From NCBI GenBank assembly GCA_965240325.2, contig OZ251247.1, forward strand, positions 1,054,001 to 1,118,000: 64,000 nt of DNA, in the 5' to 3' direction. Position 1 is the first letter of the stretch. Every line of letters starts with the position of its first letter. The translations under genes were made by a program, and so were the position numbers. Of the stretch, positions 1 to 64,000 are shown piece by piece. The notes beneath the pieces are model-generated. The model saw nothing but the letters and a program-made list of their open reading frames with translations, was not told where the DNA came from and did not search any database. This stretch comes from Rebecca billardiae RCC1528. Its lineage: Eukaryota; Protista; Haptophyta.

Positions 1-3000
1 CCGCCGCCGCCGCCGAGCGCGGCCGAGCGCGCGTGCTGCTGCTGCTGCGCCGCCCACGCGCCGCCACCGCCGCCGCCACCGCCGCCGCAGAGGTGGTGCG
101 CGCCCGGCTGCAAGCTCGCGGCGACCCACGCGCCGCCACCGCCGCCGCCGCCGCCGCCGCCGCCGCCGCCGAGCGCGGCGCGCGGCGGCGGCGGCGGCAT
201 CAGCCGCTGCTGCTGCTGCTGCTGCTCGGCGGCGGCGGCGGCGGCTGCGTCAAGCTGTGCCTGCTGCTGCTGCTGCATCAGCTGCTGCTGCTGCTGCATC
301 AGCTGCGCCTGCGCCTGCGCCTGCGCGTCGGCCGGCGGCGCGGGCGGCACGCCGCCGCCGCCGCCGCCGCCGGGAGCGACGGCCACCGCCGCCGCCGCCG
401 CCGCCGCCGCCGCCGCCGCGGTCGCCGCCTCGTGCTCGCGCCGCTGCCGCTCCGCCTGCTGCCGCGCCTGCGCGCGCGCGCGCGCCACGCCGGCGGCGCG
501 GTGTGTGCGCACGGGGGCGGCGCGGGCGCGGGCGCGGGGCACGAAGGGAGGGCAGGCGGTGAGCGCGAGATTGCAATCTCGCGCGCGCCGGCGCGCAGTT
601 GCACCCTCGCGCGCGGCGCGGCGCGCGCGGCGCCGCGCGCGAGATTGCAATCTCGCGCACACCTGCGCGAGCGCCGCGGGCGCCTCCGCCTCGCGCGCCG
701 CCTCGTCCGCCGCGTTGGCCGCGCCGATCTCCGCCGCCACGTCCGGCGCGTCCGCCACCGCCGCCACGTCGAACGAGTCCGGGGAAAGTCCGGACGCGTG
801 CCGGTCCCACGCGTGCGCGAGCGACTCCTCCCACTCCGCCACCCACGCGCGCGTGTTGAACAGCGGCGTGCTGAGCCGGTTGGCCCACAGCCGCGCGCGC
901 AGCTCGGCATACGACCCCAGGTCTGTCGCCCAGCGCACCGCCTTCTCCTCATACTCGCGCATCGACTCGGCCACCATCTCCGGGCAGCCGATCGCGTGGC
1001 ACAGCGACGCCGCCACGCGCGAGCTCATGTGCGCCTGCATGCACGTGAGCATCGGCACCCCGCTCCACAGACAGTCGGTGCCGGTGGTGTGGCCGTTACA
1101 CACCGGCGTGTCGAGGAACAGGTGCGCCACGCACGAGCGCGCGATGTAGTGCGCCTTCTCGGCGACGTTGGTGAAGACGACGCGCTCGCGCGGCACGCCG
1201 CGCGCCTCCGCCTCGCAGTGCACCGCCGCCTGCGCCTGCGGCGGGAAGCGCAGCAGCCACAGGTACGAATGCGGCACGCGGCGCAGCACCGCGCACCACA
1301 CGTCAAACGTCGCCGGGTCGAGCTTGTACAGCTGGTTGAAGCAGCAGAATAAAAAGCCGGTGGGCGGGAGGCCGAGCTCGAGCCGCCGGCCCGCCACGTC
1401 CGCCGCGCCCGCGAGGCCGGTGCCCGCGGTGGGCGGCGGCGGCGGCGGCTGCGGCGCGCCCGCGGCCGCGGCGGCGGCGGCGGCGGCGGTCGCGGCCGTG
1501 ATCGCCTGCGAACCCGCCGCGCCCGCGTGCGGGCCCACGCCCGCCGGTCCGGCGTGCGCCGCCGCGGCGGCCGCGGCGCGCGCCGCGGCGACAAACGGCG
1601 CCGCGGCGGGCAGCGGGCTCGGCGCGCTCGGCGGCGCCGCGCGCCCAAAGTCGTCCGGGCGCACGCACGCCTCGGGACGCAGCAGCGGCAGCGCGCGCTC
1701 ATCGTACGCCTGCCGGTGGTCGTTGACGAAATACGAGTGCGGCATCCGAATGATCTTCTCGCCGTACGCCCACTCGAGCTCGGGCGGCGTGACGACGCGG
1801 TCGCTCACCAGGTAGTCGATGTACGCGGCGCCCATCGTCGCGGGGAATCCCATGTACAGCAGCTGCACGCGCGCGGGGCGGAGCGCGAAGATCTCGTTGC
1901 GCGCGCCCTTTGTGTAGCTGCGCGCGCGGGGCGGTGTGTGTGTGTGTGTGTGTGTGTGTAGGGGTGTAGTAGGTAGGGGTAGGGGTAGGGTTGGGGTGGT
2001 GAGGGCTGCTGCTGGGCGGGCCAGAGGCGGGCGGGTGCGCGCACACGTGCACACGCACACACGCACACACACACACACGCACACACACGCGCGCACACAC
2101 ACGCACACACACACACACACGCACACACGCGCGCACGCACCCGTTCAGGTTGACGAGCACGTGCACGCCGTCCGCGCGGATGCGCTGCGCGACCGCGAGG
2201 GCGGAGAGCTGCGTCACGTCCACAAAGTGCTCCGCCTCCGCCATCACCTGCGGCGTGGGTGGGCGCGTGGGGGCGTGCGTCGGGTGCGTGTGTGCGTGTG
2301 TGCGTGTGCGCGTGTGTGTGTGCGTGTGTGTGTGCGTGTGTGTGTGTGTGTGCGTGTGCGTGTGCGTGTGTGCGTGTGCGTGTGCGTGTGTGTGTGCGTG
2401 TGTGTGTGCGTGTGTGTGTGCGTGTGTGCCGGCTGCCAGCGGGCGGCGCGGCGCGGAGGGGTGGGCGACTGCCCCCCCAACCGCCGCCCCACACACCCCA
2501 CAGCGGCCGCACGCACGCGCGCACACACACACGCACGCACAGCGGCCGCACGCACGCACACACGCGCACAAGAGGCGCCGGCGCACCTTTGCGCGGTGGT
2601 GGCTGCCGTCGTCCGCCGAGAGCGCGTAGCAGAACACCTCGACGCGGCCGCGGTCGTGGAAGCCAAACACCGACGCCATCAGGTGCGCGAGCGGGTGGTT
2701 TGTAAAGTCGGACGAGACGTAACCGACGCGTAACCGCCGCGCCGAGACGACGGCGCCGTCGGCCGGCCGGCGGAGCAGGCCGTCGGCGCCGACGCTCGCG
2801 TCGGGCGGCACGCGCCGGCCGAGGCCGCGCTCGCTCGGGCCGATCGGCGGCGGCGGCTGGCTCGGCGTGAGCCCCTGCGGCGCCATCGCCGCCGCCCACG
2901 CCGCCGCCTTGGCCGCGTACATCTGCGAGAGCGCGCGCACCTGCGGAGGGGTGGGGGCGAGGGCGGGGTTGTGTGCGTGTGAGTGTGTGTGTGTGTGTGT

Positions 3001-63700: not shown

Positions 63701-64000
63701 CGCGCGGCGGAGGGGACAGCGTGTGTGTGTGTGTGCGGAGGGTTAGGGTTAGGGTTAGCGCAGGGCCGAGATTGCAATCTCGCGCGGCGCCGGCGCGGGC
63801 CGCACCTGCAGCAGCAGCGCCATTCGGTCGGCGTGGCCGCGCGCAAAGTGTAACGGCCGCACGCCCGCGGCGTCGGCGCCCGCGGCGTCCGCGCCCGCCT
63901 GCGCGCGCGCGCGCGGGCCGGCGGCGGCGGTCGGCGCGCGGCGCGCGGCCGCGCGCACGCGGCGGCGGCGCGGCCGGCGCGCGCGGCCGGCGCGCATGCG
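60776..64000 (-). CDS. Ankyrin-repeat + coiled-coil + C-terminal RING (C3HC4) E3 ubiquitin ligase-like protein; 5' end off the window
   Basis: Exons 63898-63806, 63682-63221, 63042-62809, 62663-61433, 61275-60776. Ankyrin motifs (ADPNARDGRGRTALHAAC, GDAPLHVAC); RING CSVC...FAPCGHLCACAPCA...CPLC. Confidence 0.87.

Follow-up and report, generated by a model that had tools for sequence, protein, structure and literature searches.

A frame-neutral AT-rich palindrome repeated in exons and introns of a GC-rich haptophyte, and its possible spread by templated break repair

The 64-kb stretch of contig OZ251247.1 of Rebecca billardiae RCC1528 (positions 1,054,001 to 1,118,000), which was analysed in full and is called the window here, carries 34 exact copies of the 12-bp AT-rich palindrome AGATTGCAATCT, distributed over introns and low-complexity exons. 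The palindrome has been found to be real, discrete and enriched; it is without the hallmarks of a miniature inverted-repeat transposable element (MITE) or of an introner, and it decays towards GC. Our favoured, though tentative, reading is that it represents a lineage-specific non-coding block, which was spread by microhomology-primed templated break repair and was then multiplied by local slippage.

An earlier note on this DNA, prepared from the letters alone, had reported about 34 exact copies, and the present count has returned the same number, compared to 0.00-0.02 matches expected from dinucleotide-preserving shuffles. The extended forms which it described are likewise present: exact 14-mers (GAGATTGCAATCTC) number 28 and exact 16-mers (CGAGATTGCAATCTCG, with CG on either side) number 23, while the longer forms CCG..CGG and CGCG..CGCG were found 10 and 3 times, respectively. 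In a census of all 12-mers AGATTGCAATCT was the sole dispersed AT-containing family, gene paralogues and CA/GT microsatellites aside. About 12 decayed copies are recognised besides the exact ones. The near-miss variants named in the note could all be located (GAGATGCAATCTC twice and once more with a terminal G, GAGATTGCGATCTC three times and GAGATACAATCTC once), and four 13-nt copies lack one T. On allowing up to three mismatches, the extra matches consisted only of flank variants and of six one-mismatch cores, and in all six the change is from AT to GC. Since the variants run in this direction only, they point to decay of the palindrome and not to its build-up.

Although 34 copies in 64 kb lie far above expectation, they are clustered at 0.5-7.7 kb, 32.5-32.9 kb and 55.4-63.8 kb; the central 47 kb holds 2 copies, far below the prediction from the counts of CGCG or GCCGCC sites (p 1e-4 to 1e-12). 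No regular period was found in the spacing of the copies in the window. The palindrome is absent from the compact domain-coding genes of the window, including the intronless F-box/RCC1 paralogues, of which there are at least 13 on both strands in an array at 12663-48543.

The constant unit is the 12-mer itself. Of the 34 copies, 29 have C at flank position -2, 28 have G at -1, 32 have C at +1 and 30 have G at +2, while C and G are mixed at position +-3, where complementarity is at chance level. Deviations affect 13 of 136 flank positions where the core is perfect, and less than 2% of the core positions over all copies; they are thus about five times as frequent in the flank, and the outer CG would seem to be the context of a junction or target rather than a part of the unit. 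CG stands on both sides of 23 of the 34 copies, compared to about 5.6% of the sites in these regions, and 33 of 68 half-sites are preceded by the four letters GCCG. The surroundings are GC-rich low-complexity tracts such as (GCC)n, (GC)n or, behind splice donors, the GTGCGCGCG tract; the flanks have a mean GC content of 82% against 73% for the window (72.7%). A search for a target-site duplication (TSD) of 1-9 nt, with unit sizes of 12-18 assumed, gave none, the identity of the flanks being equal to that of permuted flanks, and neither a larger shared element nor fixed outer ends were found around the palindrome in the window; on both points the earlier note is borne out. Six copies within a 470-nt stretch have identical 16-mers in flanks which are about 52% alike. 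An invariant AT-rich core in unrelated flanks favours the writing of the palindrome as a block, and among the mechanisms listed in the earlier note block writing or templated insertion is the one now preferred, on account of this invariant core, the AT-to-GC decay and the rare codons described below.

The palindrome contains no stop codon in any frame of either strand, and its frames read RLQS, DCNL and EIAIS, in agreement with the readings (RDCNL, EIAIS, RLQS) proposed earlier. A length of 12 nt and the lack of stops leave any reading frame intact, which explains the tolerance of exons towards it. The exonic copies lie within low-complexity stretches rich in Gly/Ala and make use of all three frames, and they bring in rare, AT-ending codons. 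They appear to be in frame in open reading frames (ORFs) continuous with ankyrin and coiled-coil exons, and at the start of an exon of the O-GlcNAc transferase (OGT) gene, a multi-intron gene on the minus strand at 1.7-7.8 kb. The ORF 55131-60350(-), of 1739 codons, harbours 14 exact and at least 5 variant copies, in line with the more than 15 copies which the earlier note had claimed for the 55-60 kb gene. Eleven of the 14 exact copies are read as (R/G)DCNL, 10 of them before Gly runs, and three as AEIAIS. This ORF is of low complexity and has no Pfam match, and its coding signal is weak but consistent. The left flank GCCGCCG or CCCGCCG is common to the copies at 56065-57045 except the one at 56065, i.e. 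to six of the seven. In the low-complexity exon behind the ankyrin repeats, all three frames of the palindrome are used within one ORF whose coding frame is supported. The copies at 7.55-7.72 kb sit upstream of the likeliest OGT start codon, and they may belong either to a 5' untranslated region or to an N-terminal low-complexity extension. The tolerance in exons and introns on which the earlier note had remarked is hence explained as survival where the palindrome is harmless, from the stop-free 12-mer and its absence from the compact RCC1 genes.

The introns are spliceosomal, as the description of the palindrome as eukaryotic and present in exons and introns had implied. Their borders were set in the OGT gene by alignment to solved OGT structures and 19 homologues, and in the ankyrin-repeat gene (minus strand, ~61.4 kb to past 64 kb) by the Pfam ankyrin matches flanking the introns. 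Intronic copies usually lie 10-40 nt downstream of the 5' splice site. The first copy begins 9-81 nt past the donor in the nine motif-bearing introns, and in the six of fixed length it falls within the first 37% of the intron, in five of these within the first 18%. Intron 662-468 has its copies 9 and 83 nt after the donor GT 662-661; a half copy at 5287-5293 shares the OGT intron of the copy 5344-5355; and three consecutive ankyrin-gene introns (donors 63805, 63220 and 62808) bear copies. The donor-like GTGCGCGCC at 61.43 kb terminates the coiled-coil exon, and the same 9-mer stands ahead of the copy 32855. The nine introns have only the 12-16-mer in common and differ otherwise. An introner element was rejected, as the shared unit is this 12-16-mer and not the whole intron, and its distance from the donor ranges over 9-81 nt.

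These positions invite the view that the palindrome is a functional cis-element which, however it may spread, persists by selection; for example, a dimeric protein might bind it on the DNA, or an RNA hairpin might help to define the 5' end of GC-rich introns. Moreover, a donor-like GTGYG is found 9-10 nt upstream of 5 copies against ~0.8 expected, the core is conserved far beyond the flanks, and two neighbouring copies are computed to be able to pair as a 17-bp RNA duplex. Such an element is nevertheless improbable, since low-complexity coding DNA accounts for more than half of the copies, in all three frames and away from splice sites, most introns of the same genes are without the motif, and the spacing is irregular. 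The 5' bias is explained equally well by the tract of CG repeats (GTGCGCGCG...) which follows the donors with or without the palindrome; a preference of the motif for such tracts therefore suffices.

The copy at 3242-3253 is placed at a 3' splice site of the OGT gene. Its first two letters form the acceptor AG, and the next ten (ATTGCAATC-T) encode I-A-I-(W) at the beginning of the exon. HARQF closes the exon before it, and the homologues read H-x-x-Q-x-V-C-D-W at identical length, the Cys being present in 17 of 19. I-A-I thus occupies the position of the near-universal V-C-D at the junction of the TPR and catalytic regions, with the length unchanged, and about seven of the nine bases would differ from GC-rich VCD codons. 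By the replacement of VCDW with IAIW the conserved Cys is lost in the OGT of this alga. Two readings of this copy stand on a par. It may be a delete-and-replace patch, or it may have been inserted before TGG, in which case the old VCD codons would have become the start of a new intron (GTGCGCGCC) and the motif would have supplied the acceptor together with three codons.

The same copy bears on the comparison with HIP1 (GCGATCGC), the highly iterated palindrome of cyanobacteria, to which the earlier note had likened the present motif. Both are short perfect palindromes, vastly over-represented, genic and readable in all frames, and as regards density and genic location the analogy has held. It has failed for stepwise substitution or retention, the core being 100% conserved in flanks that are ~52% alike. 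HIP1 is 8 bp long, GC-rich like its genome, and is reported to arise and persist by substitution, whereas in the window a 12-bp AT-rich block in GC-rich DNA appears to arrive whole, in few genes and with tandem runs. A HIP1-like process, in which a bias of mutation, repair or selection would build the motif in place by substitutions, could produce dense occurrence within genes with all frames tolerated, as well as a copy on conserved codons with unchanged length such as 3242. It is still extremely unlikely: 8 A/T letters would need to be gained where the DNA is ~80% GC, the intermediates form no cloud (besides the 34 exact copies there are 6 with one mismatch and hardly any at 2-3 mismatches beyond flank variants), and the variants all resemble decay towards GC. 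Further, the copies 32482 and 57034 bear flanking duplications, and copy 3242 would have swapped seven of nine bases at once, as judged against GC-rich VCD codons.

Several features of the copies concern the way in which they may have multiplied. When two copies are compared, the agreement typically extends over 17-25 nt of (GCC)n at one end of the palindrome but only over 3-9 nt at the opposite end. At eight loci the motif and its flank are repeated in short tandem runs, with periods of 18, 20, 21, 21, 23, 26, 28 and 32. Flanking direct repeats are clearest around 32482, where they measure ~30 nt. In the 398-nt OGT intron, at whose acceptor copy 3242 lies, a unit of ~58 nt, made up of the exon end and the intron start, has been duplicated along with the palindrome, and the homology ends exactly there; an inverted copy of the first 15 nt of this unit adjoins it. 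The computed energy of the DNA hairpin is -5.4 kcal/mol for the 18-mer and -10.2 for the 22-mer.

In the templated-repair reading which we favour, a broken or stalled 3' end in a GC-rich tract would prime on an existing copy via a GC-rich microhomology of a few bases, by alternative end-joining or template switching, putatively of the polymerase-theta or microhomology-mediated break-induced replication (MMBIR) kind. This end would copy through the palindrome, would be released once the new palindrome folds into a hairpin, and would then rejoin through 1-3 nt of homology. The same hairpin would drive slippage, giving tandem runs (periods 18-32), duplicated flanks and an occasional delete-and-replace patch. 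Such a course of events would explain why there is no TSD, why the outer borders are soft and why flanks are shared on one side; it would likewise explain the clustering, the tandem runs, the copy that replaces in place and the duplication whose end coincides with the motif. The pattern of microhomology, variable copying and duplication is compatible with templated repair, with weak statistics (p=0.03, p=0.15).

A number of points weigh against this reading. The inserted unit and the types of junction are inferred rather than observed in an empty site, a polymorphism or a new insertion. The one-sided flank pattern is a trend only, the preference for the 3' end of C-rich tracts being 9 vs 3 at (GCC)n ends and not significant (p=0.15), and a strict polarity at these ends was dropped for that reason. 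Many copies lie within one gene and hence are not independent. The flanking direct repeats barely exceed those at control sites with CG on both sides (p=0.03), a margin over which the palindrome as a general marker of tandem-duplication junctions was given up. Finally, templated repair alone explains neither the choice of this sequence nor its perfect conservation, which could reflect selection or a sequence-recognising enzyme. Shared variants as proof of local copying were also dropped, the events being too few.

An enzyme of that sort would make the palindrome a mobile mini-element moved in trans by a sequence-specific activity, which may be a eukaryotic counterpart of the bacterial repetitive extragenic palindromes (REPs) and their REP-associated tyrosine transposases (RAYTs, of the HUH type) or a hairpin-recognising nuclease-ligase, with CG-rich targets and no TSD. 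The perfectly conserved, hairpin-capable core, the lack of a TSD, the preferred flank GCCG/CG, and clusters and tandem runs like those of bacterial interspersed mosaic elements (BIMEs) all agree with it, and HUH transposons have been reported in haptophytes (PMC10288648). On the other side, a 12-bp unit with variable outer bases leaves scant room for two end-binding sites, copy 3242 replaces sequence with the length unchanged, REPs are intergenic while these copies are intragenic, and no candidate gene is encoded within the 64 kb, where neither a transposase nor an HUH (RAYT) or other partner gene was found. Such an enzyme is unlikely on balance, but a hairpin-recognising REP/RAYT-type enzyme and selection near 5' splice sites are the serious rivals that remain.

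Alternatively, a cut-and-paste transposon with inverted termini that start with AGATTG could have left the copies behind, as excision footprints or as collapsed ends annealed via the self-complementary TGCA. The unit indeed consists of exactly two inverted 6-mers with TGCA at the centre, and annealing over 4 nt would yield uniformity. However, the constant TSD is missing at the copies, the window has no full-length element and no separated pairs of half-sites, footprints are normally heterogeneous, and tandem runs of four would be hard to obtain, so that this origin is very unlikely. Neither isolated half-sites nor separated half-site pairs are in excess in the window, and split half-sites as a sign of central cleavage were consequently dropped. 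An ordinary MITE or cut-and-paste element with terminal inverted repeats (TIRs) was rejected on similar grounds, there being no fixed TSD, no internal sequence, variable outer positions and no separated half-sites. An artefact of assembly or sequencing, e.g. at adapter or chimera junctions, has a practically negligible chance: long ORFs stay in frame through the copies, the intronic copies recur at similar places in introns with intact neighbouring exons, and decayed variants and tandem duplicates speak of an evolutionary history. To our knowledge, the palindrome matches no common adapter sequence. The footprint, HIP1-like and artefact explanations are all unlikely.

Among known systems, REP/BIME sequences with their RAYT are the closest analogue for the way in which such a repeat might operate, as they are short, hairpin-forming, dispersed repeats which are clustered and without TSD. 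REPs, however, are imperfect, 20-40 bp long, intergenic and tied to RAYT, whereas here the repeat is perfect, 12 bp long and intragenic in a eukaryotic host. The Rickettsia palindromic elements (RPEs) are palindromic repeats inserted in frame into protein genes and tolerated there, as the exonic copies in the window may be. RPEs are bacterial and measure ~100-150 bp; the present unit is ten times shorter and is also frequent in introns. Templated inserts from microhomology-mediated end joining (MMEJ) or template switching, and snap-back products, would share with it the short inserts copied from elsewhere, the microhomology at junctions, the duplications or small deletions and the tandem rounds. 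Such inserts are normally unique to each event, whereas here one sequence occurs at high copy number, and we know of no description of a single sequence spread to high copy number by templated insertion. Introners and MITE-like introns (Micromonas, Aureococcus; Amoebophrya, PMC7789003) are comparable as repeats tied to algal or protist introns, with inverted repeats close to the splice sites. An introner makes up the entire intron and bears TIRs and direct repeats of 3-8 bp, whereas the copies described here have 12 bp in common, no TSD and many exonic members. Gain of an intron by insertion, as a side effect, is plausible in the case of copy 3242.

In the literature no description was found of such a small gene-invading repeat for eukaryotic nuclear genomes, nor any relevant mention of the 12-mer. 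Viral contigs gave only single chance matches of the 14-mer, and JGI metagenomes 29 single chance matches of the 18-mer, none of them from a GC-rich alga. There were no Rfam or tRNA matches. The palindrome was not found in 31.6 kb of sequence from relatives reached through the alanine aminotransferase (Pavlovales sp. CCMP2436, a Logan contig and an MMETSP transcript), nor in 50.6 kb comprising three OGT loci from other eukaryotes of high GC content. These samples are no proof of absence, being too small and without orthology to the motif-rich genes.

The individual copies are listed in Table 1.

Table 1. Copies of the palindrome in the window with their strand, gene context and placement or reading
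Positions	Strand	Copies	Context	Placement or reading
568-579, 642-653; ~596-609	(.)	two exact; one degenerate	195-nt intron 662-468 of a minus-strand gene, as read from sequence	
3242-3253	(-)	one	OGT intron, borders by homology	spans the 3' splice site
3602-3613, 3494-3505	(-)	two exact	398-nt OGT intron, donor 3649	36 and 144 nt past donor
5344-5355	(-)	one exact	259-nt OGT intron between TPR exons	20 nt past GT 5375-5374
5584-5595	(-)	one exact	220-nt OGT intron, donor 5676	81 nt in
7576-7587; 7553-7564, 7709-7720	(-)	one exact; two one-mismatch	ORF-continuous 5' part of OGT gene	
32482-32493	(-)	one exact	long ORF 32039-35290(-)	~30-nt direct repeat on both sides
32855-32866	(-)	one exact	putative intron	10 nt past donor-like GTGCGCGCC
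55468-55479; 55622-55633	(-)	one variant (A to G); one exact	low-complexity ORF	
55898-55931	(-)	tandem pair of 13-nt variants without one T		period 21
56065, 56569, 56644, 56716, 56806, 56896, 57034 (56065-57045)	(-)	seven exact		(R/G)DCNL, then Gly runs
57395, 57593 (57395-57604)	(-)	two exact		flank orientation opposite; AEIAIS
58000, 58384, 58444, 58630 (58000-58641); 58237-58291	(-)	four exact; 13-nt variants		variants with period 21
61351-61422	(-)	four tandem		period 20; first 10 nt past donor-like GTGCGCGCC, GT 61432-61431
61999-62353	(-)	tandem variants 61999, 62017; 62073; 62342	low-complexity exon behind ankyrin repeats	RDRNL (61999, 62017); RLQS (62073); EIAIS (62342)
62752-62795	(-)	exact 62752 and one-mismatch 62784, tandem pair	ankyrin-gene intron	period 32; 13 and 45 nt past GT 62808-62807
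63161-63198	(-)	two exact	178-nt ankyrin-gene intron	22 and 48 nt past GT 63220-63219
63769-63780	(-)	one exact	148-nt ankyrin-gene intron	25 nt past GT 63805-63804

The window is eukaryotic, and a DHHC palmitoyltransferase and a class-I aminotransferase are among its genes. The aminotransferase is most similar to an MMETSP transcript (75% identity), followed by a Logan contig (71%) and by Pavlovales sp. CCMP2436 (68%), and the host is, judging from these relatives, a Pavlovales-type haptophyte. The genome of Diacronema lutheri, with a GC content of 73.25%, is similar to the window in this respect, and the palindrome is unmentioned in the paper describing it (PMC8379373). A related Logan contig (L126) has no F-box/RCC1 array between its DHHC and aminotransferase genes, which adjoin each other. 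A pure (AT)78 dinucleotide run lies at 30721-30878 between two RCC1 genes, in surrounding DNA of ~70% GC.

Some further observations on the OGT and ankyrin genes may be recorded. When proteins were searched with the OGT catalytic exon, many of the best matches proved to be very large, with 2000-3800 residues and 3-6 GT41-like stretches set apart from one another. Behind the OGT exon that closes with ...PLQK (3118-2941, minus) the sequence continues as GCGCGT instead of GT, which makes this site a candidate for a GC-AG intron. The exon end and the 5' splice-site region are tandemly duplicated at 6745-6967, 4790-4925 and 3455-3672, leaving a dead second donor within the intron, and one such exon-end/intron-start duplication (112 nt x2) is without the palindrome. 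Imperfect short telomere-like arrays of the TTAGGG/CCCTAA type are found in introns at 1975-2000, 4345-4375, 4865-4900, 5811-5860, 32686-32715, 63052-63105 and 63741-63758; the putative intron with copy 32855 is among those containing such an array. Where they occur in the OGT and ankyrin genes, arrays close to 3' splice sites show the C-rich form, with CTAAC, on the sense strand, and those directly past 5' splice sites are of the G-rich form; the orientation differs at 32.7 kb. These arrays may be branch-point or G-run signals, or repair scars.

If the palindrome is found to behave in this manner genome-wide, it would constitute a third way, beside transposons and microsatellite slippage, by which eukaryotic genes fill with repeats, with a frame-neutral block of 12 bp editing proteins and introns. 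A bolder form of the templated-repair reading, which is possible but doubtful, is that of a transposase-free "repair parasite", in which the palindrome would multiply because its hairpin turns it into a self-terminating templated insert at microhomology-repaired breaks in GC-rich microsatellite tracts. Its by-products would be protein linkers rewritten four residues at a time and an occasional splice acceptor (CAG|ATT) that creates or reshapes introns. The spread by templated repair, if true, would provide a natural tracer of the sites and modes of break repair in a genome which ranks among the most GC-rich known from eukaryotes, and a concrete case for the gain of introns and of low-complexity protein segments. 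For gene prediction in these algae, a palindrome which keeps all frames open is a practical warning.

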